From the sequence record NC_042013.1: a stretch of 64,000 nucleotides of DNA. One strand, 5' to 3'. The number at the start of each line of letters is the position of its first letter. Position 1 is the stretch's first letter. Under the pieces are notes generated by a model. That model saw only the letters and a list, made by a program, of their open reading frames with translations. It made no database searches and was not told the origin of the DNA. This document shows positions 3,710-57,014 of this stretch, piece by piece. The position numbers and the translations under genes are program-made.

Positions 3710-3767
3710 TACTCCTTGACAGTTTGGGGATTTGTGATAAACATTTCCCCAAACAACCAAAGGAGTA
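3710..3767 (+). promoter_or_regulatory. sigma70-like promoter nested in an RBS-occluding hairpin (pncB)
   Basis: TACTCCTT 3710-3717 / AAGGAGTA 3760-3767 plus GTTTGGGGA 3722-3730 / TCCCCAAAC 3746-3754; TTGACA 3716-3721; weak -10 (TAAACA) in loop. Confidence 0.75.
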
Positions 3768-3772
3768 TTGTA

Positions 3773-5071
3773 ATGATCGATATCGCAACACGCGTTCATA
3801 ATCACAATTATAAAATCGACCCTATCGTCCGTTCTTTGTTGGACACCGATTTTTATAAATTTTCAATGTTGCAACTTATCTGGATCAAATACCGTCATAT
3901 GCCGGTTACCTTCTTCCTTAATAACCGCACAAAATCTGTTCGACTTTCGGATAGTGTTGATATCCACGAACTGCGCGAACAACTAAAGTACGTACAAAAT
4001 CTATCTTTCACAAAATCAGAACTTATTTGGCTTCAGGGTAATACCTTTTATGGTCGAAAAGGAATGTTCGATTCGTCTTTCATTGAATTTCTTAGAACGT
4101 TTCGTCTTCCAGATTTTAATCTTGAAATGATTAATGATGAAATTGTTCTTGAATTTCACGGTTCGTGGGCTGACGTTACCCTATGGGAAATTTATGCTCT
4201 TTCTATCGTTAACGAACTTCGCGTTCGTCATACATTGAACCAGATGACACGTTCAGAACTCGATATCTTGTATGCACGGGCAAAAACTCGAATCTATGAT
4301 AACCTTGTAAGTCTTAATAAGCTTGATAATCTTAAAATCTCTGACTTTGGAACTCGTCGTCGGCACGGTTTTCTTTGGCAAGAATGGGTTGTTCAGGTTG
4401 CCAGAGACGTTCTTGGAAACAAGTTTGTCGGTACATCTAACGCGTTCCTTGCAATGAAACACGATTTGGAGGCGATTGGTACAAACGCACACGAGTTGCC
4501 AATGACTCTTGCAACAACCGCGAAAACGAATTCTGAACTTAAAGAATCGCAATACAAGGTTCTTATCGATTGGATGAATACTTATAATGGCAATATGCTC
4601 ATTGCATTGCCTGATACATTCGGCACAACTCAATTTTTGAACGATGCGCCAGACTTCCTTAATGATTGGAAAGGTTTTCGTGTTGACTCCAAAAATCCAA
4701 TTGAGGCTGGATACGAATATATTAAATGGTGGTCTTCGCGTGGTATTGATCCTATGACGAAACTTTGCATTTTCTCTGATGGTCTTGATACCAGAACCAT
4801 TCACGAACTTTATAATGAGTTTAATGGTAAAATGCAGATTAGTTTTGGTTGGGGTACAAACCTTACCAATGACTTTAAGGGTCTTCTTCCTGTTGGAAAC
4901 AATGGCCTTGATCCGATTTCCCTCGTTTGCAAGGTCAAAGAGGCGAATGGGCTATCGGCGGTAAAGCTAAGTGACAATTACGAAAAGGCGACAGGTAGCA
5001 ACGAACAAGTAACCCGCTATCGTAATGTTTTTGGTAACGATGGTGTATCTGGAGCACCTCTAATTGTCTAA
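3773..5071 (+). CDS. pncB: Nicotinate phosphoribosyltransferase
   Basis: SLLDTDFYK, DFGTRRR, GTNAHE (phospho-His), PDTFGT, RVDS, FSDGL, GWGTNLTND, KLSDN; true start ATG 3773. Confidence 0.95.
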   Translation: MIDIATRVHNHNYKIDPIVRSLLDTDFYKFSMLQLIWIKYRHMPVTFFLNNRTKSVRLSDSVDIHELREQLKYVQNLSFTKSELIWLQGNTFYGRKGMFDSSFIEFLRTFRLPDFNLEMINDEIVLEFHGSWADVTLWEIYALSIVNELRVRHTLNQMTRSELDILYARAKTRIYDNLVSLNKLDNLKISDFGTRRRHGFLWQEWVVQVARDVLGNKFVGTSNAFLAMKHDLEAIGTNAHELPMTLATTAKTNSELKESQYKVLIDWMNTYNGNMLIALPDTFGTTQFLNDAPDFLNDWKGFRVDSKNPIEAGYEYIKWWSSRGIDPMTKLCIFSDGLDTRTIHELYNEFNGKMQISFGWGTNLTNDFKGLLPVGNNGLDPISLVCKVKEANGLSAVKLSDNYEKATGSNEQVTRYRNVFGNDGVSGAPLIV

Positions 5072-5723
5072 CCTAAAGACATATACCGCACCAGATGGTA
5101 GCATTATTACAAAATTAGATAATAGAGCTACCACATATAGAAAATATGGAAGATATCATCGCGAAGATGGACCTGCATACTCTTCTAGTTGGGGTGAGGT
5201 ATGGTGGCTAAATGGTAATATACATCGAATAGATGGGCCTGCCAGAAAACTTAGAGGATCGGACCATGAATATTTTATAAAAGGAGTTAAGGTTCCTCCA
5301 TTTACCGATATATCTGATATTATCCCATTTAATACCGAAACAGCTATTTCTTTTTATCCAGTAGAAAGGATTGTAAATATGAAATATTATGTTATTTCCC
5401 TACAAGGGCAAGGAGACCATGAAATAAAGTTGGTAAGGCAAGATGGTTGGGATTCGTTGGAAAATCATTTGCTTACGGTTGAAATGAGAGAGGATTTCAA
5501 GGCTGCTTACAATGCACCAGACTCCAGCGAATTAGAAGATTTTTTCATTAGTCTAAGAAATAGCAACAGTAGTTCTATCATGAATGATATTGCACTTAAT
5601 ATCCCTCCTGCATCACACAATGGCGAAATGATGCATTTCTTTTCTATGAGTGAATATACCGACTTTTTACGTGCCAATCCAAAACTTATAATTGAGGATG
5701 AGTACACTGGTTATATCTACTAA
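5064..5723 (+). CDS. Hypothetical protein with N-terminal HREDGPA-type repeats; possible internal start at 5379
   Basis: YHREDGPA and HRIDGPA repeats; AAGGA-N8-ATG in frame at 5379. Confidence 0.55.
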   Translation: MSNLKTYTAPDGSIITKLDNRATTYRKYGRYHREDGPAYSSSWGEVWWLNGNIHRIDGPARKLRGSDHEYFIKGVKVPPFTDISDIIPFNTETAISFYPVERIVNMKYYVISLQGQGDHEIKLVRQDGWDSLENHLLTVEMREDFKAAYNAPDSSELEDFFISLRNSNSSSIMNDIALNIPPASHNGEMMHFFSMSEYTDFLRANPKLIIEDEYTGYIY

Positions 5724-5730
5724 AAAGTAG

Positions 5731-5784
5731 TTGACTTAAATTTTGAAAATGCTATAACTCCTGCATCGAAACGTTGTAGGAGTT
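5731..5784 (+). promoter_or_regulatory. sigma70-like early promoter with anti-SD in discriminator
   Basis: TTGACT-N16-TATAAC; AACTCCTGCA 5756-5765 pairs with TGTAGGAGTT 5775-5784. Confidence 0.75.
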
Positions 5785-5788
5785 TTAT

Positions 5789-6148
5789 ATGTCTATGATT
5801 TTTAATGACGTAATAGAGTCTTTTGAAAATGGCGGAACCGCTGTTTTGGAATACGATTCATTTTCTGATTATGACCTTACTATTGTTGGTCTTGCTGATT
5901 ACAAATTTGATCTTTATAAGCGTTTCAAAAACGAACCTATTGAAACGGTCGAAGATTTTAATGATTTTTTTGCGGAAAAAGACAATGAAAGTATCTTTTT
6001 CTTTGAAATCGAAACAACGTCATCTTCTGAATTGAAGAAAATAGAAGACGCATATAATTCACTTGAAAACAAAACTGGTGTTTATATTGTTATTCCAGAT
6101 ACTATCAATTTTGAAACGAATCAAAAACGGTTTCATTTCTTCCGATAA
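5789..6148 (+). CDS. Hypothetical acidic protein
   Basis: ORF with AGGAG RBS and own promoter. Confidence 0.7.
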   Translation: MSMIFNDVIESFENGGTAVLEYDSFSDYDLTIVGLADYKFDLYKRFKNEPIETVEDFNDFFAEKDNESIFFFEIETTSSSELKKIEDAYNSLENKTGVYIVIPDTINFETNQKRFHFFR

Positions 6149-6152: not shown

Positions 6153-6204
6153 TTGACATTATTTTTCGATGGTGTATAACTCCTGCATCGAAACATTGAA
6201 GGAG
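6153..6204 (+). promoter_or_regulatory. Duplicate sigma70-like early promoter
   Basis: TTGACA-N16-TATAAC; the 20-mer TATAACTCCTGCATCGAAAC is identical at 5753-5772 and 6175-6194. Confidence 0.75.
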
Positions 6205-6211
6205 AACTAAA

Positions 6212-6592: not shown

Positions 6593-6614
6593 AAAGCCCC
6601 TTTTCAGGGGCTTT
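6593..6614. terminator. Bidirectional intrinsic terminator
   Basis: AAAGCCCC-TTTTCA-GGGGCTTT with A/T flanks, between convergent genes. Confidence 0.85.
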
Positions 6615-9299: not shown

Positions 9300-9521
9300 T
9301 TAGTTAGAAGGGGTTTCTTCAGCAGACGCATTTTCAGTCGCTGCGGTTGCGTCTTGAGCAGCCTTGACGAAGGAAGCAAACTTGTCGCGAATCGAGCCAA
9401 CGCTCGAAAGTTCTTCGCCCTTGAAAGCACCACGCTGCGCAGCAGTATCAATAATAACTACGATGCTGGTAAGATCGGTAAGCGTGATTTGTGCAATATC
9501 AGAATTAGTTTCGGTTGTCAT
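9300..9521 (-). CDS. Small hypothetical protein (late)
   Basis: MTTETNSD..., GAGG RBS; host-like codon use. Confidence 0.7.
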   Translation of the reverse strand: MTTETNSDIAQITLTDLTSIVVIIDTAAQRGAFKGEELSSVGSIRDKFASFVKAAQDATAATENASAEETPSN

Positions 9522-9575
9522 TTTGAACCTCATTGTTAGTAACATATTTACTATATATTATTGAGGTTCAAAATG
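9519..9575 (-). promoter_or_regulatory. TAAATA late promoter inside a 14-bp RBS/AUG-occluding hairpin
   Basis: CATTTTGAACCTCA 9519-9532 / TGAGGTTCAAAATG 9562-9575; TATTTA 9545-9550. Confidence 0.8.
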
Positions 9576-9586
9576 TCAAAATTTAA

Positions 9587-10177: not shown

Positions 10178-10405
10178 TTATGGCCGATTGCAGTACCTAA
10201 CGATACTATCCGGTAAATTATAAGATGCCTCTTCCTCAACACGAATGATAGTTTCTAATTTATTAAAAAGAGTACATAACTCTTCTTTGTCATTACTAAT
10301 ATGTGCACGTGGCACTTTTGAAAAGATATTTGTTTCAGGTTGTACATTAGAATAGATGAACAACCCAAAACCAAATAACATTAGAACTATACATACGTAT
10401 CTCAT
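10178..10405 (-). CDS. Small membrane-anchored protein
   Basis: N-terminal hydrophobic helix; start ATG 10405. Confidence 0.55.
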   Translation of the reverse strand: MRYVCIVLMLFGFGLFIYSNVQPETNIFSKVPRAHISNDKEELCTLFNKLETIIRVEEEASYNLPDSIVRYCNRP

Positions 10406-13521: not shown

Positions 13522-13830
13522 TTAATTTCTTTCTATATTACATTCATATCTAAGAACGAATTGTAAGGCATCATCCGAGTCTTCAAATGCTACACCAACA
13601 GAATATGCGCAATGTGAATACCACCCCACACGTTCATATTTATTCTCGCAGTATTCTTCAAGAAATGCCATCATTTCTTTCATGATATCCGCGTTATAGC
13701 GAGACATTTTTACAAGAGTGTAACCGGGGAATTTCTTTTTAATATGCTCTGGAAAGTTACTATCCTCCCAATCATATTCATCAATATCCCAAACGTCGTC
13801 TTCAATGTCATTATCTAAGTCTAAAGTCAT
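13522..13830 (-). CDS. Small paralogue-family protein
   Basis: Ends VGVAFEDSDDALQFVLRY. Confidence 0.7.
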   Translation of the reverse strand: MTLDLDNDIEDDVWDIDEYDWEDSNFPEHIKKKFPGYTLVKMSRYNADIMKEMMAFLEEYCENKYERVGWYSHCAYSVGVAFEDSDDALQFVLRYECNIERN

Positions 13831-13837
13831 AATTTAT

Positions 13838-13885
13838 CTCCATAAAAATTAGTTGCTATCTTGTGAATAACAATATTCTATGGAG
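13838..13885 (-). promoter_or_regulatory. RBS-occluding hairpin
   Basis: Minus strand CTCCATAGAA...TTTTATGGAG (10 bp with one GU) covers the GGAG RBS; TAGAAT -10-like box in the 5' arm. Confidence 0.55.
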
Positions 13886-13898
13886 GTTTAAAAACGAT

Positions 13899-16197: not shown

Positions 16198-16219
16198 AAT
16201 ATAAACCCTAGAAGTAATA

Positions 16220-44608: not shown

Positions 44609-44660
44609 TTGACATTTAATTTCATTAATATACTATGTTAGTATCGAAACGACATAGGAG
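44609..44660 (+). promoter_or_regulatory. sigma70-like early promoter with ATCGAAAC start element
   Basis: TTGACA-N16-TACTAT; ATCGAAAC at the same offset (34) as at 5731 and 6153; CTATGT / ACATAG pairing over the RBS. Confidence 0.7.
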
Positions 44661-44666
44661 ATATTA

Positions 44667-45511: not shown

Positions 45512-45565
45512 TTGACTTTATGTAGAGATATTATATTATACCTTTAATGTAAAACAAGGAGGTGT
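45512..45565 (+). promoter_or_regulatory. sigma70-like promoter with anti-SD discriminator
   Basis: TTGACT-N16-TATTAT; ATACCTT pairs with GAGGTGT. Confidence 0.55.
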
Positions 45566-45568
45566 TAT

Positions 45569-46467: not shown

Positions 46468-46932
46468 ATGAATACCCTATTTTGTGATTTGGACGGAGTT
46501 CTCGTAAATTTTGAGGCAGGTTTTTATGATAACTTCAACGTCCCCCATAGTTCTGTACCGGAAGATGAAGCATGGGATATGATCGAAAATCATCATATGC
46601 ATTGGGATAATCTCCCACCAATGGATGATTGGAATATGCTGTGGTCATACATCAAGAAATATAAGCCTATCATCCTAACTGGTTGTCCTCGTATTGGTCA
46701 TGATATTGCGGCTGCTGGAAAGCGCGAGTGGGTAAAAAAGCACCTTGGTAGTGACGTCCCTGTAATTACTTGTTTCTCAAAAGACAAGCAGCTACACATG
46801 AAAAACAAAGGTGACGTATTAATCGATGATCTCGTGAAAAACATCAAGAGGTGGAAAGAGGCGGGCGGTAATGGTCTACTGCACGTAGATTCGTTGTCAA
46901 CGATTGGCAAACTCAAGGAACTTGGATGGTAA
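46468..46932 (+). CDS. HAD-family 5'(3')-deoxyribonucleotidase (NT5C-like)
   Basis: DLDGVL, ILTG, GKREW, LIDD. Confidence 0.88.
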   Translation: MNTLFCDLDGVLVNFEAGFYDNFNVPHSSVPEDEAWDMIENHHMHWDNLPPMDDWNMLWSYIKKYKPIILTGCPRIGHDIAAAGKREWVKKHLGSDVPVITCFSKDKQLHMKNKGDVLIDDLVKNIKRWKEAGGNGLLHVDSLSTIGKLKELGW

Positions 46933-47291
46933 ATAACGAGTCCCACTTGCTGTTTGATATAGTGGTTGGAGAGGTGTTTTTTATAAAAATAGCTCTCGCC
47001 ACCTCTTTCTTATCATTGGTTATTATAATGATTAGTGGATTGTATTGGATGGTAGCAGTGGATATTGTTATCTTCTCGTTGTTTTTTGCCGCAATACAAC
47101 AACGTTCCATTTCTAAATATTGGTGCTTATATTCTTTTCACAAATTCATTATCCGTAATGATAGGCAGCGCGCATATATGGATAATATCGATATTAGTGA
47201 TAAAATATGTTGCCCATCGTATCTATATGACCAAGACGCGGTAGTTTTGAGATACGAACACGACACGTTGGCGTTAAGATTAATGGAATAA
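46926..47291 (+). CDS. Membrane-anchored hypothetical protein (possible paralogue-family member)
   Basis: Two TM helices; ends VVLRYEHDTLALRLM. Confidence 0.5.
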   Translation: MVNNESHLLFDIVVGEVFFIKIALATSFLSLVIIMISGLYWMVAVDIVIFSLFFAAIQQRSISKYWCLYSFHKFIIRNDRQRAYMDNIDISDKICCPSYLYDQDAVVLRYEHDTLALRLME

Positions 47292-47294: not shown

Positions 47295-47618
47295 ATGACA
47301 GAAACACTTGCAAATTATATTACCGAATATCTAAACGAAATGAAACAGGAAAACGAAAAGTTTCTAATTGAATTTCCGTTTTTCTGGTTGCCCCCGTTTC
47401 AGGAAAAATACACCAATGCGAATCACCTTACCTATAAAGATTTCGGTGATATCATTGATAAAAGTAATGAATTAACAGAAAAAATAAAACAATATGTCTC
47501 GGTTGAGGACTTCCTCGCATTTGATACGCGATTCGGCGGCGAATACAAGGAATATTCTCTTGGCATTCTTTTCAGAAATGAAGACGATAAATTAACTGCT
47601 ATGCTCGCGTGCGGATAG
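47295..47618 (+). CDS. Paralogue-family protein
   Basis: Ends GILFRNEDDKLTAML. Confidence 0.65.
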   Translation: MTETLANYITEYLNEMKQENEKFLIEFPFFWLPPFQEKYTNANHLTYKDFGDIIDKSNELTEKIKQYVSVEDFLAFDTRFGGEYKEYSLGILFRNEDDKLTAMLACG

Positions 47619-47991
47619 CCTTAATCGCTCGCTTGATATATTCATCTGTTTGATGAACCAAATTATGGGGGAGATTTTCCAGATGAAAAATCTCAACATT
47701 TTCGTCTGTTGTTGTCATCACAAAATCAATATCTTCTGACGAAATTGCAAAAACGTCTATTGTGAAATCCGGTCCTTTTGATGTTACTACTGGTATCCAA
47801 TCTTCTGGTGAGGTTTCAACCGACGTCTCCTCGAGGAATTCTCTTGCCATAGCTTGATTGCCGGTCTCGCCATCTTCTATTTTTCCACCAACCAAGTTAT
47901 ACTGGCCTGCTTGCCAAGTGGGAGTTTTTTTCAAAATCAAACACAACCTTGTTAATTCAAGATCGAACATTGCACCAAGAACATATTTCAT
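47599..47991 (-). CDS. Nudix hydrolase (MutT-like)
   Basis: GGKIEDGETGNQAMAREFLEET. Confidence 0.85.
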   Translation of the reverse strand: MKYVLGAMFDLELTRLCLILKKTPTWQAGQYNLVGGKIEDGETGNQAMAREFLEETSVETSPEDWIPVVTSKGPDFTIDVFAISSEDIDFVMTTTDENVEIFHLENLPHNLVHQTDEYIKRAIKAIRTRA

Positions 47992-48038
47992 ATTACACCT
48001 AAATACAATAAACAGTTAATTATGAAGGATATCACGTT

Positions 48039-48245
48039 ATGGGAGATAAAGTCAAATTTATTGATATTGGAAGCAAATCTATTAATGCATACGACATCGT
48101 CGCCCATTACATTGTAGACCAATCATATGTGATCGACTTGGTTTCAGACCGCCATATATTTAATAGCCCTGTTGACATCGCTGACCCTGAAGCTACTAAA
48201 CAAGAGGTATCTGATATAATAACTCAAATTGAAAATGATCAATAA
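48039..48245 (+). CDS. Small hypothetical protein
   Basis: GAAGGA RBS; TAAATA at 48000-48005. Confidence 0.55.
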   Translation: MGDKVKFIDIGSKSINAYDIVAHYIVDQSYVIDLVSDRHIFNSPVDIADPEATKQEVSDIITQIENDQ

Positions 48246-48968
48246 TCAAAGAACGAAATGGGCGGTCTTTCCAGTTTCGGATACTACAGCATATCCCTCT
48301 TCTGCTTTATAGACAGCATAGTCGTGACCAAAAATTCTTTGTAAATTTTCAACCATAAAATCAAAATCTTTTCTAAAATTCATGTTAGAAACGTGTTGAT
48401 AATGTTTACTAAATTCGTCAAAACTTTCATATAACGTTGTTTTAAAACGATGAGTTGAACGGCCATCGCCAATTATGACATTGCCTTCGTTAAGAGATAA
48501 CGTTCTAACGTTACTATTTGATACAAAATTTTTCAACGATTCCGCCAAATCCTCTTCAGCATTTGGCTTAGGATCGGTTCTTAATAACACGTGCAAAATA
48601 GTTTTATCAAGTTTGAAAACTTTTTCATGTTTGTAATACGTAAATTGCCAATCTTCGATGTTCGTTAACGCAGTCACATCTGCAATGATTGAAAGTATTT
48701 TGTTCTCGGTTTCAGTATTTCTTAGAATTTCAACAAAAACCATAAAGTAACCGTTTTCGTTGGCAGCAACTGATACCTCTGTATCAAGAATAGCCATCGC
48801 ACTTTTTTGAATAAAGCGATTGAGGTCTTTTGCTGCGAGTTCGTGTTTTACATAAAACCCAACCACTACCGCGTCATCATCGATTTTTGATTCAAATTCG
48901 TCTATTGATACAACAGGGAGAACTAGGTCAGCTAGATCGCCTGCTGCCAAACCTTCAACTATTTTCAT
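48246..48968 (-). CDS. Hypothetical protein
   Basis: L.EGL..GDL..LV...SIDEFESKI...VVVGF. Confidence 0.75.
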   Translation of the reverse strand: MKIVEGLAAGDLADLVLPVVSIDEFESKIDDDAVVVGFYVKHELAAKDLNRFIQKSAMAILDTEVSVAANENGYFMVFVEILRNTETENKILSIIADVTALTNIEDWQFTYYKHEKVFKLDKTILHVLLRTDPKPNAEEDLAESLKNFVSNSNVRTLSLNEGNVIIGDGRSTHRFKTTLYESFDEFSKHYQHVSNMNFRKDFDFMVENLQRIFGHDYAVYKAEEGYAVVSETGKTAHFVL

Positions 48969-49483
48969 TGTTCTTCCTCGTTTTGTTCTGTATCTTCGCC
49001 GCCGTCTTCTGCTGCGAATTGTGTATTTGTATCAATGTTTTCATCACGTGCGTCTGAAATATCTTCGATATCGATCATAGAGTCATACAATTCAAGATCG
49101 TCATCATCAAGCTCTTCAATAAACTGACGTGGAATTTTAATTGTAACAAGCCAAATTTCTTTTTCAACAAAAGCAGGACGACCATTTGCGGTGCTTGAAG
49201 GAGGAACAGTGTCGTCCTTCATTTTACGAAATGCTTTTGCGTATTTTACCTTTGCGCCGTGCTTTATAATTCTAACAGCGCCCTGTGGGTCTGGCATTTC
49301 ATCAATAGGAAACGCCAGAGTGATGGTAACCCAATATCGTTCGATATTAGGTCCATCAACTACTTCAGCATCAAACCAGTTGTCAAAAACGTAGACATCC
49401 AAATTATCAAGGAAGTCCTCAATTTGAATTAGAACTGAAATGAGCGTTGCATTTTTTTGTAATCTCGTTAAGAAATTTGACAT
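48965..49483 (-). CDS. Hypothetical protein
   Basis: L...EDFLD.LD.YV..NW...EVV.GP...RYWV...MPDP.G; start ATG 49483. Confidence 0.75.
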   Translation of the reverse strand: MSNFLTRLQKNATLISVLIQIEDFLDNLDVYVFDNWFDAEVVDGPNIERYWVTITLAFPIDEMPDPQGAVRIIKHGAKVKYAKAFRKMKDDTVPPSSTANGRPAFVEKEIWLVTIKIPRQFIEELDDDDLELYDSMIDIEDISDARDENIDTNTQFAAEDGGEDTEQNEEEQ

Positions 49484-49526
49484 CGCATAATATACCAAGT
49501 TTTTCCTTCTTAGGTATTTATGCGAT
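49482..49526 (-). promoter_or_regulatory. TAAATA late promoter in a hairpin covering the start codon
   Basis: ATCGCATAA / TTATGCGAT (9 bp) plus inner ATACC / GGTAT; TAAATA overlaps the 5' arm. Confidence 0.7.
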
Positions 49527-49531
49527 TTGTA

Positions 49532-50302
49532 TTAACTTAATTTGATATCCAAAAGTTGATAAAATAGATGCAATTTATTACCGGTCAAGCGATTAACTTC
49601 TCTGATATTGTCAACGTTTCCATCTTTAACGGCTTTGATAAGCATCGTATATTTTTTAGTAATATCATTTATATGTGACCCTTTGAATTTTTTCATTTGT
49701 TCAAAGTCACACGTCACTGATCCAGAGCTAAAAATTTCAAAATACCGGCTTGACAAGCAAAGGATAACAAAAAACACCTTGTCCTCAAAGGACATGTTAT
49801 CAATTTTATATGCGGCATTGTTATATGATTGTGCAGCACGATCACAAATGTTATTCCACTGTGGATCAATTTTGTCATACGGTGCTGGTTTTCCATTAGG
49901 AAACTTTTTCAAAAGCGTTTCTCGTGCTGCATTAATTTTTTCCTGACGCCTTTTAACTTCATTGTCAACGCGTTCATTAATAGCGGCGATTGATTGGATT
50001 GATTCATATCCACGCAATGAAACTGCTAAGATCAGTTCCTCAAACAAGCTAACAATAGTTTCGTCCTCGGTGTGCTTAGCCGCATCAAGAATCATCAATT
50101 CAAATGCAAATGGCATTAGGTCAAGACGTTCTGCCATACCCATACGTCCGATATTACTTGCACTTGGATAGTTGATTTGTGGTTTTGATTTAGCGGTATT
50201 AGTAAGCGTCTCAAACAGTTTGGATTCTGCCGCCGCCTCTCGTTCTTTTTCCATCAGTTCAATCATTTCACCACTAATAATAAAATTTTCATCCATAATC
50301 AT
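49532..50302 (-). CDS. Hypothetical helical protein
   Basis: ORF in operon. Confidence 0.65.
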   Translation of the reverse strand: MIMDENFIISGEMIELMEKEREAAAESKLFETLTNTAKSKPQINYPSASNIGRMGMAERLDLMPFAFELMILDAAKHTEDETIVSLFEELILAVSLRGYESIQSIAAINERVDNEVKRRQEKINAARETLLKKFPNGKPAPYDKIDPQWNNICDRAAQSYNNAAYKIDNMSFEDKVFFVILCLSSRYFEIFSSGSVTCDFEQMKKFKGSHINDITKKYTMLIKAVKDGNVDNIREVNRLTGNKLHLFYQLLDIKLS

Positions 50303-50970
50303 GATACAACTCCTGCCTTTTTCAAAAGATTAATAACGGTTTCATATGAAAATTTACGTTCTTTGATATATTCTATGTCAAATTCAACGATATTATATCC
50401 ATCCATGTTAACTTTTTTAATACATTCATTCATTCCACGAACAATTTTTTGTTCGAATGGTGTGAGATTGAAAATAGAAAATGGAAGAGAAACAATCTTA
50501 GTTTCGATATGTTCACACATAAGAGCGTACTGTTCTTTGACAGCCTCCGCTCTGTCATCAAGAGTTTTTGACGTCTCGAGACTCCGTTTATGATTGTTAA
50601 TACTATCATAGTATTGCTTCATTCTCATGTCATTTTGAAGTTTTACAGAATTATATTTTTTTGAAATTTGTTCACCGATTTCTGGAATCGTCAAAACTGC
50701 TCGCGTGATGAGACTTTCTATTTCGTTTGAAAGGAGAGAAAGTTTTTCATTATTTTTTGTGGACGTCAAAAATTGCAAAACCGTATCAACCAGAACAGGT
50801 TCGCATCCTATCATTTCGGATATTTCATTAGATGGGGGGAAAATAATACGAGGAGCAGATTCCAACTCAGGTCTTATTGGTTCAGAACTATAATAGCGAC
50901 TCGTTTGCCTAAGAGACGAAATTGATCGTCCCTCGTCAAAAATAGCCTGAGCATTTTCCTGCGTTATCAT
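50299..50970 (-). CDS. Hypothetical helical protein
   Basis: Start MITQEN at 50970 with AAGGAG RBS. Confidence 0.7.
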   Translation of the reverse strand: MITQENAQAIFDEGRSISSLRQTSRYYSSEPIRPELESAPRIIFPPSNEISEMIGCEPVLVDTVLQFLTSTKNNEKLSLLSNEIESLITRAVLTIPEIGEQISKKYNSVKLQNDMRMKQYYDSINNHKRSLETSKTLDDRAEAVKEQYALMCEHIETKIVSLPFSIFNLTPFEQKIVRGMNECIKKVNMDGYNIVEFDIEYIKERKFSYETVINLLKKAGVVS

Positions 50971-50977
50971 CAAAATA

Positions 50978-51026
50978 TCTCCTTTCATTGAGTTTTTACA
51001 CTACAATGAAAGGAGAGTATTGTCAA
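50978..51026 (-). promoter_or_regulatory. sigma70-like promoter whose spacer is a perfect 13-nt anti-RBS
   Basis: TTGACA-N17-TAGTGT; TCTCCTTTCATTG 50978-50990 / CAATGAAAGGAGA 51004-51016. Confidence 0.85.
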
Positions 51027-51791
51027 TCAAACATCTACATCTTTGTAGAGTTCAAGAATTTCTTTAATAACAGGATGGCGTTCAACATTTTTATAGCTGA
51101 ACTTAACCACATCGATCATACGGCTGTTTTCAAATCTCGTCAAGAAATCTGAAAGACCGTTGTCTTTGCCTCTATCGCCCTGTCTTTCGTCACCAGTAAT
51201 GATAAGTTTAGAGCCTTCACCAATACGAGTTAGTACTGATAGCATAGAACGTACTGTTGAGTTCTGTGCTTCGTCAAAAATCACCCACGCTTTCTTAAAT
51301 GTTCGACCACGGATATATGCAATTGGAACTAGTTCAATAATGCCTTCTTCAAGCATTTTTTCAATTTCCATTTTACTAAAGTATTCATTGAATACGTCAA
51401 GCACCGGTTGACACCAAGGGGCTAATTTAGCGATAATATCACCGGGAAGGAAACCAATGTCTTTATCATCAACTGCGATGTTTGGACGTGTTACGACAAT
51501 CTTTTCTATCTCACCTGCCTTTAATGCTTTGATTGCCATAGTTGTTGCTACGTGGGTTTTACCCGTACCTGCTGGACCAACAGCAAAAACGATATGTTTG
51601 CGCTTATCAGACAAACTTTCGATTAATGCCTCTTGTTCAACATTTTTTGGAAGAATGTTTACTTCTTTTGATCTTTTTTTGGTAGGGATGTCAAGTTCAA
51701 TCACGTTGTCTTTGCGTGAACGGTGATTGGAACGCGGGGCGCGTTCTTGACGAGAGGAACGATTATTACGGGTTGCTGCTCTTTTAGCCAA
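51027..51791 (-). CDS. phoH: PhoH-family ATPase
   Basis: GPAGTGKT, TRP, IGFLPG, YIRGRT, DEAQN, TRIGEGS, GD..Q.D, RH; probable TTG start 51791. Confidence 0.93.
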   Translation of the reverse strand: MAKRAATRNNRSSRQERAPRSNHRSRKDNVIELDIPTKKRSKEVNILPKNVEQEALIESLSDKRKHIVFAVGPAGTGKTHVATTMAIKALKAGEIEKIVVTRPNIAVDDKDIGFLPGDIIAKLAPWCQPVLDVFNEYFSKMEIEKMLEEGIIELVPIAYIRGRTFKKAWVIFDEAQNSTVRSMLSVLTRIGEGSKLIITGDERQGDRGKDNGLSDFLTRFENSRMIDVVKFSYKNVERHPVIKEILELYKDVDV

Positions 51792-51870
51792 AGTCATCTC
51801 CTGACAATTTAGGCTTCTCACATAAGTATTTATCTTTTAAAAAAGCAGATAATGTGACAGTTATATGAAA

Positions 51871-51888
51871 ATGGCCCTTGCGGGCCAT
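51871..51888. terminator. Intrinsic terminator
   Basis: ATGGCCC-TTGC-GGGCCAT flanked by A/T runs. Confidence 0.8.
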
Positions 51889-51893
51889 ATTTT

Positions 51894-52514
51894 TTAAGCT
51901 ATCCAACCGGGGTGCGTACACCCATCATTTGTGATACAATCGTAAATTTCTTTCCAAGACCAAACTCGCTTTGCGCCAGTTTCTTTGAAGTGACGATTGT
52001 ATGTTCGTGTAATCAAAAATGACATATGACCAAGGCGAGCACCGTCCTCCGCGTGTTTCGGATGATCCTCAATCCAATATGTAGGTCTATAACGGCTAAG
52101 ATATTTTTCTTTACTTGCTCCAACAGGAACAAGATGAACCGTATCAAACGTGTCTGGAAAATATTTTTCAAGATTTCCCCTACGCGCTTCTTTATGCCAT
52201 TCGTCGTCGTTACAAGCGGATATCGCAACGAATTTGTATCCCTCTCGTTTCAACCACGAAACGGTGTCAACAGCATCTTCCATAGGTTCCAAATAAGGAA
52301 ACCAATCTGGATCATTATTGAAATCACGAACAATTGGTCGGGTATCCTCATATGACATACCTAGCCAATCCTCAACGTTCATTGAATCGCGCAAGCCGAC
52401 TAGTGGAACAGCTACACCATATTTCAAATGATTAGCCCTGAACCACTTTTCAAATCCGTTTCCCCAATTAAGAAGAACACCGTCAACATCTGTTAAAATG
52501 AATTTATTCGTCAT
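51894..52514 (-). CDS. HAD-family nucleotidase (T4 gp30.2-like)
   Basis: TDVDGVLLNW, AISA, WIEDH; start ATG 52514. Confidence 0.8.
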   Translation of the reverse strand: MTNKFILTDVDGVLLNWGNGFEKWFRANHLKYGVAVPLVGLRDSMNVEDWLGMSYEDTRPIVRDFNNDPDWFPYLEPMEDAVDTVSWLKREGYKFVAISACNDDEWHKEARRGNLEKYFPDTFDTVHLVPVGASKEKYLSRYRPTYWIEDHPKHAEDGARLGHMSFLITRTYNRHFKETGAKRVWSWKEIYDCITNDGCTHPGWIA

Positions 52515-52818
52515 TATTACCACCTCCAAACATAGCTTTAGCTGCCGCCATATTTTCAGGTGACGCCTGCGCCCAAGCCGCAATAAATTTACCAATTTCT
52601 TCACGATAACGGCTTACGTAATCAATAAACGGGTTGTCGTTTTCTTCCTCAAAACGGTTCTTTATGACCTTTCCATTAAACAAATCAAAAATCAAGGACG
52701 CGCTTGTTAAAATATTTGCTTTTGGAAGAGTATCATACAATCTCATATTTTCAACGACCTTACCCTCGAGATTGGTATCTTTATGAATATGAGTAATTAC
52801 CATATAGATTGTTTTCAT
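52504..52818 (-). CDS. Hypothetical protein
   Basis: ORF in operon. Confidence 0.65.
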   Translation of the reverse strand: MKTIYMVITHIHKDTNLEGKVVENMRLYDTLPKANILTSASLIFDLFNGKVIKNRFEEENDNPFIDYVSRYREEIGKFIAAWAQASPENMAAAKAMFGGGNNDE

Positions 52819-52819
52819 A

Positions 52820-53767
52820 TTAAGTTTCCTTTACGCGCTGTAGATTGACTAAGCATGCAGCGAGATTAATTTCAGGATCAAAAATTGTAGTGTGAATGTT
52901 TGCAGCCTCGGCAATAGTAATCAGAGCCATATTATGATGCTCCTCGGTATCACCAAACAGTTCAAGATTTTTAGAGAAATAACGATAGACATCCTCATAC
53001 GTACCGTCGCCCATTTGTGCGCAAAGATATTTACGAGCCTCCGTATATTTTCCTGCCAGAAACATTTCGCAAAAAGTTACGATATAATCTAGACTTGCGT
53101 CGGTTCCGGCTTCCATCTTGTTAAGAGTGCCGTTGATAGTATTCTGCTCAAGAAGATTGATACATTTACGCATATCTGGAAATGTCTTTTCAACATAATC
53201 CAAAATATGCTCTGGTTCGAACGTTACGTCTTCGGAAACAAGAATGTCAAAAACACGCGTTACAAATCCCTCTTTATCCAGACCGTCAAGATGAAACCCT
53301 TGAACACGACTATGAAGAGCGGGGATGATTTTTGATGCGGTGTTAGCGGTAAGAATGAAACGCGCTGTATCTGAATGCAATTCCATTTCCGCACGCAACG
53401 CCTTTTGAGCGGCAGGAGTGAAACCGTCGACCTCGTCAAGAATTACAATTTTGAAATCGCCCATAGGCCAAGTAGAACAGAAATTAGAAATATTCTGACG
53501 AACCTCGTCAATACCGTTATTTCTGGATGCATTGATATAAAGCAAATCAGCTTTTTCAACTTTCATTTCATTACAAAGAATGAAAGCAAGTGTAGTCTTG
53601 CCAGTACCCTGTACACCACTCAATAAAAGATGTGGAATAGGAATGTTCTTTTTTTCAGGATTGGCAAGCCAACCAAGAACGGTTTCTTTCATACGTTCGT
53701 CTTTAAAGACATATCCTTCGATACCAGAAGGACGATATTTTTCTACCCAAAGTTCTTTAATAGCCAT
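52820..53767 (-). CDS. Clamp loader AAA+ subunit (gp44/RFC-like)
   Basis: LWVEKYRP, GVQGTGKT, INAS, ILDEVD, LHSR, PDMR. Confidence 0.92.
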   Translation of the reverse strand: MAIKELWVEKYRPSGIEGYVFKDERMKETVLGWLANPEKKNIPIPHLLLSGVQGTGKTTLAFILCNEMKVEKADLLYINASRNNGIDEVRQNISNFCSTWPMGDFKIVILDEVDGFTPAAQKALRAEMELHSDTARFILTANTASKIIPALHSRVQGFHLDGLDKEGFVTRVFDILVSEDVTFEPEHILDYVEKTFPDMRKCINLLEQNTINGTLNKMEAGTDASLDYIVTFCEMFLAGKYTEARKYLCAQMGDGTYEDVYRYFSKNLELFGDTEEHHNMALITIAEAANIHTTIFDPEINLAACLVNLQRVKET

Positions 53768-53769
53768 TT

Positions 53770-53821
53770 GTTATAGTCCGTTATTTTGTTTATTTCTAAC
53801 TGTAACAAACCGGCCTATAAC
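53770..53821 (-). promoter_or_regulatory. Long imperfect hairpin over the clamp-loader RBS
   Basis: GTTATAG / CTATAAC, CCG / CGG and TTTGTT / AACAAA stems; TAAATA lies upstream (53829-53838). Confidence 0.5.
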
Positions 53822-53835
53822 GTTTCAATATTTAT

Positions 53836-54018
53836 TTAATGAAATCTCAATATAAACGCAGAAGCATCTTCACCACGTTTGAAGCTTACATTTGATGGAG
53901 ACCAAACGTAATGAACAATTTCCATGTCCGCGCACCATTCATCGATTTCTTCTTTAGTCACACCCTCAGGGATTTCGATATTATGTAGGCCAACAGTTAA
54001 TAGATTTTTTACGACCAT
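53836..54018 (-). CDS. Minimal paralogue-family protein (60 aa)
   Basis: EEIDEWC...VSFKRGEDASAFILRF; AGGAG RBS. Confidence 0.7.
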   Translation of the reverse strand: MVVKNLLTVGLHNIEIPEGVTKEEIDEWCADMEIVHYVWSPSNVSFKRGEDASAFILRFH

Positions 54019-54025
54019 GAAAAAA

Positions 54026-54079
54026 GGCTCCTGATTTATAACAAAAAGTTATAATATCAAGAGCCAAATAAAATGTCAA
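54026..54079 (-). promoter_or_regulatory. sigma70-like promoter inside a 17-bp RBS-occluding hairpin
   Basis: TTGACA-N17-TATTAT; GGCTCTTGAT / ATCAGGAGCC plus TTATAAC / GTTATAA. Confidence 0.85.
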
Positions 54080-54083
54080 ATAG

Positions 54084-54419
54084 TTATTGTACTTCTAATG
54101 GTTTGGTTTCGGATACAAGAAGAATTGCGTCATTGTCAATTCTCTGTACATAATAGTCGCCGGATTCAATTGACACGTTAAATCCCATTGTCCAACGACC
54201 GTGTTCAACAAGAAGCCATTCACCCGGTTTAACATAGTCGATCTTTGATCCAACCTTATAAACCTTGCACCAACGTGGTTTGATGCCTTCTTGCGTACCA
54301 TTGTCATCACGGAGAATAATCCCCCCTCTGGTCAACTTTTCACCCTGTTCCATTTCATATACTAAGATATGATCGGAAACCGGTTTAACATCGCGTCCTT
54401 TAGTGTCTCTAAACTGCAT
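54084..54419 (-). CDS. groES: GroES-like co-chaperonin
   Basis: KPVSDHILV...TRGGIIL...VYKVG...VKPGE. Confidence 0.88.
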   Translation of the reverse strand: MQFRDTKGRDVKPVSDHILVYEMEQGEKLTRGGIILRDDNGTQEGIKPRWCKVYKVGSKIDYVKPGEWLLVEHGRWTMGFNVSIESGDYYVQRIDNDAILLVSETKPLEVQ

Positions 54420-54426
54420 TTATTTC

Positions 54427-54837
54427 TCACTCTTCATCATCATCAACAAGGGTTCGTGGCTTTACCGGAGTTCTAATCGGAGAAGGTTTCTTCACGATTG
54501 CTGCTGGTTGTTCGGCACTTGTTGCCTTTTCAGCTTGTGCTGCCTTCTTCGCTTCCGCAGCAAGACGAATAGCTTCAGCAGGTGTCACAAACACATCTGG
54601 CTGAATTGTTTCTGGCTTGTGCACGTCACCTTCGATTTCGGTATTGTAATTCGTTTCAAGTTCTTCACGGGTGTACTTTACCTTACCATTACGGTCTAGT
54701 GCGTCACCACGTGCATTCATACGAATGGTTGAACTTCTACCCGTAACAGCTACGGTCTCTTGATTATTTGAAAGGATTGCTTCAACGTCGACGGGAACGC
54801 CTCTCATTGAAACATATTTACCAACTGTCATTATCAT
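54427..54837 (-). CDS. Hypothetical protein
   Basis: SMRGVPVD...MNARGD.LD..G. Confidence 0.75.
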   Translation of the reverse strand: MIMTVGKYVSMRGVPVDVEAILSNNQETVAVTGRSSTIRMNARGDALDRNGKVKYTREELETNYNTEIEGDVHKPETIQPDVFVTPAEAIRLAAEAKKAAQAEKATSAEQPAAIVKKPSPIRTPVKPRTLVDDDEE

Positions 54838-54846
54838 TCTCCTAAT

Positions 54847-55380
54847 TTATTCAAGGAATTCCGAAAAGTCTAGATCATATTTTATACTATTTACTTTATG
54901 AACGCCTATGATATACAAAATATAACTACTTACACAACTCCCACGACCAACGCCTTTGACAACGTTATGCTCTCTAAAAGTATCCGTAAGGAACAAAAGA
55001 GCTTTGAGAACCATTTCAAGGTCATATTCTTTGTATTTCTCATATTCGAAATCTACACGACTTCTTTCTTCTTCGGTATTTACTCTGGTTATTATATACG
55101 AGTATATATCCATATTTCTATATTTTTCAGGAATATTCCAAATATTTTGACGTTCTTTGTCATATTCCTCTACCGAAATACTTGGTTTGTTATATGGATG
55201 TAATACTTTATGAGCCTCGTCGGTTGTTCTCACGCTTGTATTATAAACGTCAAGTGCATCTGACTGTATTACTTTAAAGTCGCTGATATCACCGCCTTGA
55301 ATAAGAACGTCATATAGTTGTTCAACTGTTGAATATACTATACCATAATCGTCAACTGTTCTATTTTTAAGTTCTATCAT
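54847..55380 (-). CDS. Truncated DNA polymerase III alpha (DnaE) palm-like protein
   Basis: GVGRGSCVSSYILYIIG...IKYDLDFSEFL; stops before the PDxD catalytic motif. Confidence 0.8.
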   Translation of the reverse strand: MIELKNRTVDDYGIVYSTVEQLYDVLIQGGDISDFKVIQSDALDVYNTSVRTTDEAHKVLHPYNKPSISVEEYDKERQNIWNIPEKYRNMDIYSYIITRVNTEEERSRVDFEYEKYKEYDLEMVLKALLFLTDTFREHNVVKGVGRGSCVSSYILYIIGVHKVNSIKYDLDFSEFLE

Positions 55381-56021
55381 TTTCCACCGTCAAATACCGT
55401 TGGTACAAAACCTGTTCTTTTTTCAACCAATTCTTCAGGGACGTATGATGGCTCAACATTGATATAATCAGACTCGGTTGGAACTAAGTCAACGGTTGAA
55501 TAATCCGTTCTATCAAACCAAGGTTTTTTGTGAAACGAAGTTGGCCCAATCCATTCAAGCATTGATACCGGTTCAAGATCATTCTTGGTAGGATTTTTTT
55601 GAATACCAAATTCGTCGCCACCACCTGACTGAACTACAGAAATCGTGTCGTAAATAACTCTACCTTCACCAAGAGCATGGAGCTTTCTAAAAATAGTTGA
55701 GGCAATTGCAGCATCCGAGAGATTGCTAGGTATCAATACAACATTATTATCTACAATAGATTTATAATTTTTAAGGAAAATTTCTTTTGCAATTGCATTT
55801 TCTGAATCGATAAAAACGGATCGATTTAGATATTTTAAAATGAACCTATTTTTTCGATGGAGTAATTCGTTCACTTCATCCGTACTAAAATAGTCATCGG
55901 CAGAAAATCCGAATAAACCAGAAATAGTCATCTTTGATGGTATCAAAGTTTTGTGCATGTAGAGAGTTGCATTAATTGTATGGGAAAAAGAGTTTTTTGC
56001 GTTTTGAGCAATATTGAACAT
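55377..56021 (-). CDS. Hypothetical protein
   Basis: ORF; WFDR.D.ST.D. Confidence 0.7.
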   Translation of the reverse strand: MFNIAQNAKNSFSHTINATLYMHKTLIPSKMTISGLFGFSADDYFSTDEVNELLHRKNRFILKYLNRSVFIDSENAIAKEIFLKNYKSIVDNNVVLIPSNLSDAAIASTIFRKLHALGEGRVIYDTISVVQSGGGDEFGIQKNPTKNDLEPVSMLEWIGPTSFHKKPWFDRTDYSTVDLVPTESDYINVEPSYVPEELVEKRTGFVPTVFDGGK

Positions 56022-56180
56022 ATTCCAACCAACCGTTTAATTGTCTATATGACGAATATACGGTATCGTTTAGGTATCAGCAATATAAATTTCAAATTCT
56101 GGCCAGAATTTTCTACCTAGACCTTATGTGAGAAGCAATGTTAAGGTTTTGGTATCTTTCAAATATATTTATCAGTTTAA

Positions 56181-56525
56181 TTATGCTGATGGCTTATTTT
56201 TAAAAGTTTTTTGAAAAATTTTAGGTGTCCCTGCTTTGTTTTCTGTTTTAGGCGTGTTTGAAAATTTTGACACTTTTTCAACCTTGACACCCCATCCTTT
56301 ATCGGCTGGAATAACGTCATCCATTTTTTCTGAAAATTCTTTAATCATAGCCTCGTTTGATCGAACCTCTATTTCAAGTTGGACCATATCACGTAGATTA
56401 TAGAGCGTATCAATTAGGTTCTGACTCGCATTAATATATCTAGTCGAGTAAATTTTTTTATTAATTTCCATAAGGCGTTCCATCAAGTCTTCTTCACTTA
56501 ATGTATCAAGATCATATATATTCAA
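56181..56525 (-). CDS. Hypothetical protein
   Basis: N-terminal coiled coil, basic tail. Confidence 0.65.
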   Translation of the reverse strand: MNIYDLDTLSEEDLMERLMEINKKIYSTRYINASQNLIDTLYNLRDMVQLEIEVRSNEAMIKEFSEKMDDVIPADKGWGVKVEKVSKFSNTPKTENKAGTPKIFQKTFKNKPSA

Positions 56526-56542
56526 TGGAACGCCCCTATTTT

Positions 56543-56950
56543 TTAAATGTCGCCTTCTTTACGAACTTCACTATTATTTACATCAAATTTACCACCGGGA
56601 TAACGTGATTCGAGCTTGCGCACATTTTCTTCAATAATAGCATATGGATCAACATTCAGTGCAGCCGCTGCCGTCACAAAATAAAATGCAATGTCGCCAA
56701 GTTCGCGAAAAAGATGAAACTTGTTATCTTCATTCCAAGGCTTTCCCTGAAACATAATTTTCTTAACAATTTCCATGAATTCACCGCCTTCTGCGGTAAT
56801 ACCAACTGCACCAGTCAATAGGCGTGCAATGTTACAATCTTGTGATTGAAGTTCACGAAGACGTTTAATGAACGTTTCAGTATCCATAGATGGTTCACTT
56901 GTAACCGCCGTCACAAAATCAGTGTAATTATTTAGAACTTTTTCTGACAT
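56543..56950 (-). CDS. MazG-like nucleotide pyrophosphohydrolase
   Basis: AEGGEFMEIVKK, ELGDI, NVRKLESRYP; start ATG 56950. Confidence 0.88.
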   Translation of the reverse strand: MSEKVLNNYTDFVTAVTSEPSMDTETFIKRLRELQSQDCNIARLLTGAVGITAEGGEFMEIVKKIMFQGKPWNEDNKFHLFRELGDIAFYFVTAAAALNVDPYAIIEENVRKLESRYPGGKFDVNNSEVRKEGDI

Positions 56951-57014
56951 ATTGATTTCTTTCATTAATTTGAATTAATGATTCAATATATCATTCGTTA
57001 CCATGCTGTTTCAA
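56949..57014 (-). promoter_or_regulatory. sigma70-like promoter with a nested hairpin reaching the AUG
   Basis: TTGAAA-N18-TATATT; ATATTGA / TCAATAT plus TCATTAAT / ATTAATGA. Confidence 0.55.

Follow-up and report, generated by a model that had tools for sequence, protein, structure and literature searches.

Bases 186001-250000 of Agrobacterium phage Atu_ph07 (MF403008.1) contain a series of predicted RNA hairpins that straddle promoters and pair with the ribosome-binding site (RBS) of the downstream gene. This stretch of 64,000 nucleotides (nt), called the window in the following, was assigned by a 100% identity match to Atu_ph07, a jumbo phage of 490,380 bp from the genus Polybotosvirus. 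We lean towards the reading that, at most of the sites, these sense-RNA hairpins would gate translation by transcript origin, as in the genes e, soc, 49, and I-TevI of phage T4, a precedent that a preliminary description of the window had invoked and that is documented (PMC3014915). The Atu_ph07 hairpins would then belong to the T4-type promoter-in-hairpin translational gate, which they would make commoner than the textbook cases imply, without adding a new principle. The paper reporting the phage describes no promoters, terminators, or hairpins for Atu_ph07, and it lists a T4 gp55-like late sigma factor among the encoded proteins (PMC6102473).

The preliminary description had listed 15 sites, here named by their first coordinate, at which inverted repeats would pair the RBS or AUG with the promoter. 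According to the record annotation, the minus strand holds most genes at 6620-43450 and 47599-64000, and 10 of the 15 sites were therefore read as reverse complements. Positions -100 to +6 of every downstream gene were folded in the gene's own orientation. At 12 of the 15 sites (3710, 5756, 9519, 13838, 32346, 33834, 39018, 41863, 44633, 50978, 54026, and 56949), the folds contain a stem between the downstream Shine-Dalgarno sequence (SD) or AUG and a segment located within a TTGACA-N16-18-TAnnnT or TAAATAC promoter or upstream of it. The 3' arm covers the SD with or without the AUG, and the 5' arm is found 20-60 nt upstream of the 3' arm. Among the 17 positions from -14 to +2, 11-16 are paired upstream at 11 of the 15 sites, and 7 are paired at 54026. 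The arms are separated by 9-42 nt at 13 sites, and by 3 nt at 45538 and 5 nt at 5756 in the window fold. Of the remaining three sites, 6180 and 45538 are weak, and 49482 pairs codons 2-6 instead of the RBS.

To compare these stems with chance expectation, the RNAduplex energy between the RBS window (-18 to +6) and the upstream part (-90 to -19) was set against dinucleotide shuffles of the upstream part, with p<=0.05 counted as a pass. Individually, nine of the 15 sites pass, three have p values of 0.065-0.09, and three are not significant. Among annotated genes in the window, 13 of 30 behind co-directional gaps of 30-125 nt pass, compared with two of 37 with a gap of <20 nt. Junctions across the whole genome were taken from our own gene caller, which within the window agrees with the annotation at 85/89 stops and 76/89 starts; it over-calls in the 250-490 kb region (521 calls), so that counts from there are approximate. 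In this genome-wide set, co-directional gaps of 40-90 nt pass in 41/137 cases (30%; 6.9 expected; binomial P=6e-21), whereas gaps of <20 nt do so in 21/438 cases and divergent gaps of 40-90 nt in 7/60 (Fisher 0.006 versus co-directional). The control junction classes are at the expected 5%, and in the first 250 kb the co-directional fraction is 22/66 (33%). The enrichment over shuffled sequence that had been predicted is thus present, and its confinement to co-directional gaps suggests that the structure matters only where RNA can come from upstream.

The excess is also positioned. In co-directional gaps of 40-90 nt, the 3'-arm excess is maximal at -15 to -6, which corresponds to the SD (+0.16, +0.24), and the 5'-arm excess lies at -55 to -26; gapless junctions have no positional excess of either arm. 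A further comparison held motif content constant by pairing each RBS with the 45 nt upstream of the predicted transcription start (+1) of each of 37 promoter regions. The gene's own region was the best partner in seven cases (one expected) and among the top two in 11 (permutation p<=1e-4).

Folding with and without the upstream sequence gave a consistent result. The cost of opening was calculated as the free energy to unpair positions -15 to +3, either in a read-through RNA (-120 to +35) or in an RNA from the predicted +1, which was set 7 nt past the -10 box or 6 nt past TAAATA. A pair-probability occlusion score was dropped in favour of this opening energy; the RBS is paired by shuffled AT-rich RNA too, which made that score noisier than duplex energy. 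The read-through minus local difference is 18.0 kcal/mol at 39018, 15.9 at 33834, 15.0 at 50978, 12.8 at 9519, 12.2 at 54026, 10.3 at 32346, 8.8 at 3710, 7.0 at 5756, 6.8 at 41863, 5.5 at both 44633 and 56949, 3.8 at 49482, 2.9 at 45538, and 0.2 at 6180. Opening therefore costs 5.5-18 kcal/mol more in read-through RNA at 11 sites, and about 7-18 kcal/mol more at nine of them. The mean difference of 8.9 kcal/mol at the listed sites compares with 1.8 at 23 other promoter-motif sites of the window (Mann-Whitney 2.5e-5). By these calculations, RNA that enters from upstream must expose the RBS far less than RNA started locally.

A generic sigma70 scan was uninformative in the AT-rich DNA of the window (65 found versus 65.5 expected), and promoter motifs were instead judged by where they lie with respect to start codons. 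Of the 69 TTGAC[AT] occurrences found <=90 nt upstream of starts in the first 250 kb, 53 are 50-64 nt from the start. TAAATAC has 17 copies in the window, 10 of them within the non-coding 9.6%; a start on the same strand follows 11 of the copies at a distance of 22-41 nt. Both are positioned elements, which we read as a putative sigma70-type -35 box and a putative T4-like late box. Late-type boxes occur at 33834, 39018, 49482, and partly 9519, and sigma70-type boxes at the other 10-11 sites. The motif-derived +1 falls at -17 to -31, which predicts leaders of about 17-31 nt. As had been claimed for both promoter types alike, the 5' arm is located at the predicted +1 or upstream of it in 13 of the 15 listed sites and in 15 of 16 motif-bearing genome sites. 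In addition, the late box TAAATAC(C) and (G)GTATTTA are complementary, which allows the box itself to act as an anti-RBS arm. Such an arrangement is seen at about 81740-81800 of the Atu_ph07 record, upstream of the small terminase open reading frame (ORF) at 81368-81739, as TAAATACCTACATA...TATGTAGGTATTT; the late box is also the pairing arm at 49482-49526 of the window and in the leader of T4 gene e.

Taken together, these features are compatible with the following mechanism, in which start sites, read-through RNA, and the effect on translation are all predicted from sequence. A polymerase coming from the upstream co-directional gene would transcribe both arms. The 5' arm, located in the spacer between -35 and -10, in the -10 box, or in the TAAATAC box, would then pair with the 3' arm containing the SD and often the AUG, and the 30S subunit would bind poorly. 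RNA from the embedded promoter would start downstream of the 5' arm, lack the stem, and be translated, so that translation would depend on which promoter had produced the RNA. About one third of the hairpins, those with a U-run, would probably also terminate or attenuate read-through. In silico, the SD or start codon is paired in RNA from upstream, and by motif position the promoter lies within or just past the 5' strand, with no clear promoter at 13838.

Several observations weigh against such a gate. That the 5' arm is upstream of +1 adds little and is no independent evidence of design, since leaders as short as about 22-28 nt leave it almost no other position; the predicted physical consequence for the RBS is unaffected by this. 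The presence of a hairpin is unlinked to a recognisable promoter motif (17/27 versus 38/61; Fisher p=1.0), and no hairpin is present at about 78% of promoter sites, among them the majority of the 38 copies of an early-promoter cassette. In a 41-kb segment of Pseudomonas phage PA5oct (168721-209632), only one of 16 gaps of 30-130 nt passes the shuffle test. There is no close relative for nucleotide-level covariation, with IMG/VR containing the phage itself only and a metagenome scan being empty. Finally, runs of at least four T residues between SD and ATG occur at 9/27 hairpin sites compared with 5/48 non-hairpin sites (Fisher 0.028), and the T fraction in this interval is 0.41 at hairpin sites versus 0.27 at others (p=0.003). 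From this enrichment, about one third of the hairpins look like combined attenuators and occluders, which points to termination at a subset.

The explanation that survives best besides translational gating is that the hairpins are mainly terminators or attenuators, or stabilisers of the 3' end of the upstream mRNA, with the SD overlap as a by-product of compaction in gaps of about 55-70 nt. Besides the T-runs, found at five of the listed sites (5756, 33834, 39018, 50978, and 54026), this account could draw on the U6 ends of 39018 and 54026 and on the terminator-like sites upstream of 104252 and 81739 in the record. The scarcity of hairpins in divergent gaps fits termination equally, and the missing association with a promoter motif agrees with it as well. 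However, a strict rule, requiring a stem that is rich in G+C and at least 5 bp long, a 3-8 nt loop, and a U-tract immediately 3' of the stem, detects about eight canonical terminator-like hairpins elsewhere in the intergenic regions of the window, including those at 6593-6614 (bidirectional), 38059-38084, 43691-43709 (minus strand), and 51871-51888, but is matched by none of the 15 sites, and none of their gaps holds a canonical terminator. The long loops at 13 of the 15 sites and the lack of a U-run at two thirds of hairpin sites also argue against termination, as does the 3'-arm excess, which peaks precisely on the SD (in T4 at -25 to -21). In Sinorhizobium phage Phosso, moreover, a single gap (locus L007, 23412) contains a canonical terminator that is followed by a distinct pairing between promoter and SD. 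We regard termination as the main role as somewhat unlikely. The statement that the sites are not ordinary terminators therefore stands as regards the rule and the loops, and needs qualification for the five sites with T-runs.

The further proposal that the hairpins replace terminators did not survive, given the canonical hairpins in the window and the U-runs at about a third of the sites. One canonical intrinsic terminator, AAAGGGGCAGGTTATACTGCCCCTTT (16219-16244, minus strand), straddles a TTGACG-N18-TATACT promoter, as would also be expected if the other hairpins were terminators, and indicates that ordinary terminators coexist with occluders. In this fully overlapped terminator-promoter module (16219-16256, minus strand), GGGGCAG...CTGCCCC-TTTATT, the 5' arm lies in the promoter spacer and the -10 box in the loop.

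Translational coupling would also close the RBS, but only until the 5' arm is melted by a ribosome that completes the upstream gene; translation of read-through RNA would then keep pace with that of the upstream gene instead of being muted. The 5' arm is indeed within reach of a terminating ribosome at 3710, where it overlaps the upstream stop, at 39018 (2 nt past the stop), and at 32346 and 33834 (3-6 nt past). In about 15 of 25 genome sites (for example, 5756, 54026, 56949, and 41863), however, it starts 10-72 nt past the upstream stop and thus beyond this reach, which makes coupling improbable as a general explanation. Slightly less probable still is RNA processing, in which stems would be cut by enzymes of the RNase III or RNase E type, splitting polycistronic RNA into units with defined ends. 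Such cleavage might be expected of the long interrupted structures at 39018 (-34 kcal/mol) and 3710 (-35 kcal/mol) and of an enrichment limited to co-directional gaps. Most stems, however, have 10-17 bp and large loops, which is below the typical length of RNase III substrates, no conserved cleavage motif or Rfam family match was found, and the SD-centred 3' arm would be left unexplained.

The repeats might alternatively act in DNA, as operators of dimeric regulators or as cruciforms that tune promoter activity, given that they overlap the -35/-10 region and that some cassette copies contain a -10-centred palindrome. At 20 of 27 hairpin sites, the sense strand folds more stably than the antisense strand, a comparison biased by the choice of sites on the sense strand. 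It was therefore redone from strand-neutral seeds of at least seven perfect Watson-Crick pairs, whose extensions contain 23 G-U versus 10 A-C positions (p=0.035). The arms have no sequence in common across sites except CTCC/GGAG, and repeats are scarce at divergent promoters. The strand bias, the differing arms, and the divergent promoters without repeats together argue for a structure of the sense RNA, and operators or cruciforms are very improbable. Chance complementarity in AT-rich intergenic DNA, which could account for the three individually non-significant sites, is scarcely credible and was rejected for the set as a whole by the genome-wide shuffle and permutation tests, with control classes at their expected level.

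How widely translational gating could apply was assessed across the genome, since the preliminary description had proposed a general design covering sigma70-type and late promoters alike. Both types do take part, but only 24 of 109 sigma70-type sites (~22%) and 12 of 56 late-type sites (~21%) pass the shuffle test, and of the 58 TTGAC[AT] sites counted within the first 250 kb, 10 have p<=0.05 and 17 have p<=0.1. The promoter-in-hairpin arrangement is not a general design. The early-promoter cassette, TTGACWTTATTTTT..GTGTATAACT..ATCATCGAAACG..AGGAG, has about 38 copies in the genome, mostly lacking RBS pairing. Its copies in the window are at 5731-5788, 6153-6211, and 44609-44666, and the cassette has ATCGAAAC as a conserved sequence where +1 is predicted. 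In some copies, pairing occurs between the spacer, TTTCGATGGTGTA, and the +1 region, TACATCATCGAAA, leaving the -10 box in a 4-nt loop and the RBS outside the structure. Covariation within a sample of 18 cassette copies is weak (p=0.025), driven by one copy, and was not used as evidence.

Boxes of the early and late types are interspersed along the same strand of Atu_ph07. Among sigma70-type sites, hairpins occur at 5/12 located downstream of a late-type site versus 6/36 downstream of a sigma70-type site (p=0.11); with a looser, post hoc cut-off of 0.1, the values are 8/12 versus 8/36 (p=0.011). Comparing class switches with junctions of the same class gives 9/23 versus 10/50 (p=0.09), which is suggestive only. 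We tentatively raise the possibility of a two-way temporal insulation, in which early RBSs would be closed in late read-through RNA and late RBSs in early read-through RNA. Early genes would be muted through pairing of the RBS with their own sigma70 promoter spacer, and late genes through pairing with their own TAAATAC box, so that timing could be set promoter by promoter without terminators. If true, this would constitute a general but so far unrecognised design rule for the genomes of T4-like and jumbo phages, with the generality suggested because T4 early promoters show the hairpin architecture too.

The individual sites vary in how the arms are placed relative to the promoter. In the following group, the 5' arm overlaps the -35 box or lies in the spacer. 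The hairpin before the nicotinate phosphoribosyltransferase gene (3702-3775, plus strand; identified by folding) has its -35 box TTGACA at 3716-3721. Its 5' arm (3702-3717) contains ACTCCTT overlapping the -35 box, its 3' arm (3760-3775) is AAGGAGTATTGTAATG with the SD and the ATG at 3773, and an inner nested stem is formed by TTTGGGGA/TCCCCAAA. Opening costs 11.7 kcal/mol in read-through RNA versus 2.9 in local RNA (shuffle p=0.06-0.08). Site 9519 (9515-9579, minus strand; start 9521) has a stem of 14-17 bp and reads TTGACA (9579-9574), TTTTGAACCTCAAT, a loop with TATATAGTAAATA, and ATTGAGGTTCAAAATG. Its 5' arm TTTTGAACCTCA lies in the promoter spacer (9562-9579), the loop sequence comprises a TAAATA box besides the -10 box, and TGAGGTTCAAAATG (9515-9532) forms the 3' arm. 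The shuffle p value is 0.01, and the own promoter region is the best RBS partner among the 37. The site of the ClpA-like ATPase gene, 41863 (41849-41916, minus strand; TTGACA 41916-41911), pairs (CA)TTCGTTTCT...CGT in the spacer (41896-41912) with ACGAAAGGAAAC...ATG (41849-41867; p=0.09). Site 50978 (50969-51027, minus strand; -35 TTGACA 51026-51021; start 50970) has a stem of 13-18 bp in the order TTGACA-ATAC-TCTCCTTTCATTG with the 5' arm in the spacer, the -10 box TAGTGT in the loop, and the 3' arm CAATGAAAGGAGA followed by TATTTTGATG (p=0.02).

At other sigma70-type sites, the -10 box itself is part of the pairing or adjoins it. Site 54026 (54013-54079, minus strand; start 54018) has TTGACA at 54079-54074, N17, and the -10 box TATTAT. 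The 5' arm GGCTCTTGATATTATAAC extends across the spacer and the -10 box, and the 3' arm GTTATAAATCAGGAGCC is followed by TTTTTTCATG; with p=0.01, the own region is the best partner among the 37, and the U6 tail makes the site terminator-like. The DNA ligase gene site 32346 (32328-32414, minus strand) has a TTGACC-N18-TATAAT promoter, a 5' arm ATAATACGGTTT (32366-32378) beginning in the -10 box, and a 3' arm AAACCGTATTATG (32344-32356) over the start codon. Its shuffle p value is 0.04, again with the own region as best partner. The same holds for the MazG gene site 56949 (56933-57014, minus strand; TTGAAA 57014-57009, N18, TATATT; start 56950; p=0.01), in which ATGATATATTGA(A)TCATT, the -10 region itself, pairs with AATGA...ATCAATATG over the start. 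An additional strong site, which the preliminary description had not listed, precedes the clamp-loader (RFC small subunit) gene (53757-53828, minus strand; TTGAAA-N18-TACAGT), with arms TTATAGGCCGGTTTGTTACAGTT (53798-53820) and GACTATAACAAATGGCT (53757-53778). It has p=0.01, its own region as best partner among the 37, and a read-through minus local difference of 6.9 kcal/mol.

Three of the sites with sigma70-type promoters are copies of the early-promoter cassette or resemble it. The copy at 5731-5805 (plus strand; -35 TTGACT 5731-5736; -10 TATAAC 5753-5758; start 5789) contains the core stem of site 5756, AACTCCTGCA (5756-5765) and TGTAGGAGTT (5775-5784), then TTTATATG (p=0.02; a T-run of 4 past the stem). 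The weak site 6180, in the copy at 6153-6211 (plus strand), has only the 5-bp pairing of CTCCT(GCA) (6180-6187) with (TGA)AGGAG (6197-6204), and its spacer TTTCGATG also pairs with CATCGAAA at +1 (p=0.22). Site 44633 (44609-44685, plus strand) has a cassette-like promoter right after tRNA-Ser, with TTGACA at 44609-44614 and TACTAT at 44631-44636; CTATGT(T) (44633-44639) pairs with (G)ACATAG (44651-44657), followed by GAGATATTAATG and an ATG at 44667, a longer, unannotated start (p=0.065). The weak site 45538 (45512-45587, plus strand; TTGACT 45512-45517; TATTAT 45534-45539) has a short pairing of 5-6 bp between ACCTT and AAGGAGGT (AAGGAGG; p=0.29).

At the late-type site 33834 (33817-33898, minus strand; start 33830), TAAATAC (33866-33860) is in the loop between AAAACCTCGGAA (33867-33878) and TTCCGAGGTTTT (33834-33845), which is followed by ATAATG (p=0.02; a T-run of 4). 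Site 39018 (39009-39087, minus strand; start 39016) has an outer stem, AAAAATCTCC/GGAGATTTTT, and an inner stem, GTATAAGTAA/TTACTTGTAC, whose 5' arm includes TAAATAG (39056-39050); U6 and then the ATG follow, and the tail is terminator-like (p=0.01). Site 49482 (49482-49526, minus strand) forms a genuine 12-bp stem between ATCGCATAAATA (49515-49526), with the late box TAAATAC (49520-49514) in the 5' arm, and TATATTATGCGAT (49482-49494), which corresponds to codons 2-6. The loop contains the RBS together with the TTG annotated as the start (49498), and the RBS-window shuffle test gives p=0.66. Finally, site 13838, before the gene at 13522-13830 (13817-13904, minus strand), pairs CTCCATAGAA with TTTTTATGGAG across a loop of 27-30 nt (p=0.01); it has no clear promoter motif, with only a weak candidate (TAGAAT) within the 5' arm.

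A search against Rfam 15 at gathering score revealed no match to a cis-regulatory RNA family in the window, the sole match being tRNA-Ser (44506-44595). Right behind this tRNA-Ser(GCT) (44506-44598), an ATG ORF of 75 amino acids (aa; 44667-44894, plus strand) has its own TTGACA-N16-TACTAT promoter and an AGGAG RBS; the start in the record is a TTG at 44745, which is probably too far downstream. Further ATG-start ORFs of 60-145 aa, several with an SD, are present in stretches left unannotated in the record (44106-44492 and 46926-47291 on the plus strand; 23740-24174, 18968-19360, 10178-10405, and 38412-38597 on the minus strand) and may be missed genes. Two adjacent minus-strand ORFs, 25877-27130 and 27149-28846, are 18 nt apart and both labelled 'DNA polymerase', which suggests a split polymerase gene at 25877-28846.

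If confirmed, translational gating by promoter-straddling hairpins would turn a curiosity of four T4 genes into a common layout element, found at about 30% of the same-direction junctions of a very distant phage, with sigma70-type promoters taking part as well as late ones. For annotation, it would call for joint calling of start codons and promoters; for transcriptomics, it would imply that RNA abundance does not equal translatable RNA; and for engineering, it would offer compact promoter-plus-RBS insulators usable as parts.

Among known systems, intrinsic terminators that overlap the next promoter resemble the Atu_ph07 sites in having a hairpin in a co-directional gap, followed by a U-run in about one third of cases. 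They differ in that the Atu_ph07 sites mostly have 9-42 nt between the arms, AT-rich stems, no U-tract, and a 3' arm that is the RBS. Coupling stems of RNA coliphages and some operons likewise close the downstream RBS by long-range upstream pairing, whereas in Atu_ph07 the 5' arm is mostly out of reach of the terminating ribosome and a promoter lies between the arms.

The comparison with other phages was made at the level of architecture, with Phosso, PA5oct, and T4, and the phage collection contained no nucleotide-level relative of Atu_ph07 or Phosso. In Phosso, the orthologues of MazG (63% aa identity) and the clamp loader (48%) pair the RBS to the spacer with unrelated arm sequences, and TAAATAC/TAAATAG boxes are also found upstream of orthologous genes. 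The RBS-to-spacer pairings of Phosso, together with its gap at 23412, supply the sole comparative support. None of the 12 co-directional gaps of 40-90 nt in this phage (41 kb) passes the shuffle test, the clamp loader having p=0.065. In the related jumbo phage PA5oct, orthologous genes are nearly gapless, and the existing gaps hold classical G+C-rich terminators. The near-absence of occluders in PA5oct indicates that the architecture is lineage-specific and not common to all jumbo-phage relatives.

The closest parallel is T4. In its genes e, soc, 49, and I-TevI, as well as in mobE of phage Aeh1, the SD and/or AUG is held in a helix in upstream-initiated transcripts; the gated T4 genes have their own promoter in the DNA of the 5' strand, and its transcripts miss that strand and get translated (PMC3014915). 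The TAAATAC late-type box is likewise placed at 33834, 39018, and 49482 and upstream of 81739 in the record, and the promoter box itself (TAAATACC) can serve as the anti-RBS (GGTATTTA), as it can in T4 gene e. Differences concern the alphaproteobacterial host of Atu_ph07, its 490-kb genome with only a distant T4 relation, its late box TAAATAC compared with TATAAATA in T4, and the share of about 30% of co-directional junctions, known from sequence alone, compared with four textbook cases. When bases 1-100,000 of T4 were put through the same test, 8/37 co-directional gaps of 40-90 nt (22%) passed, as did 4/12 gaps of 20-39 nt; the 22% is not significantly different from the 30-33% of Atu_ph07 (p=0.26). 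Of the T4 controls, e (p=0.03) and 49 (p=0.01) were recovered, and soc was not (p=0.15). The mean 3'-arm excess in T4 peaks upstream of the SD, unlike in Atu_ph07. The reviews consulted name only e, soc, 49, and I-TevI and no early-promoter version (PMC3014915, PMC2988021). An older survey of T4 promoters may include such a version. Nevertheless, at T4 early promoters (NC_000866), including those of regB (62740), denV (65355), nrdC.8 (53885), motB.2 (8161), and modB (13130), a 5' arm lies between GTTTAC (-35) and the -10 box and a 3' arm on GAGG/GGAG, as in regB, GTTTAC-TTTTCCTCTTGACTG-TGGTATAAT...CAGTTAAGAGGAGAA. Because this spacer-to-SD pairing matches the Atu_ph07 sigma70-type sites exactly, the extension to sigma70-type promoters is not special to Atu_ph07, and the type of promoter may not define this family of gates.

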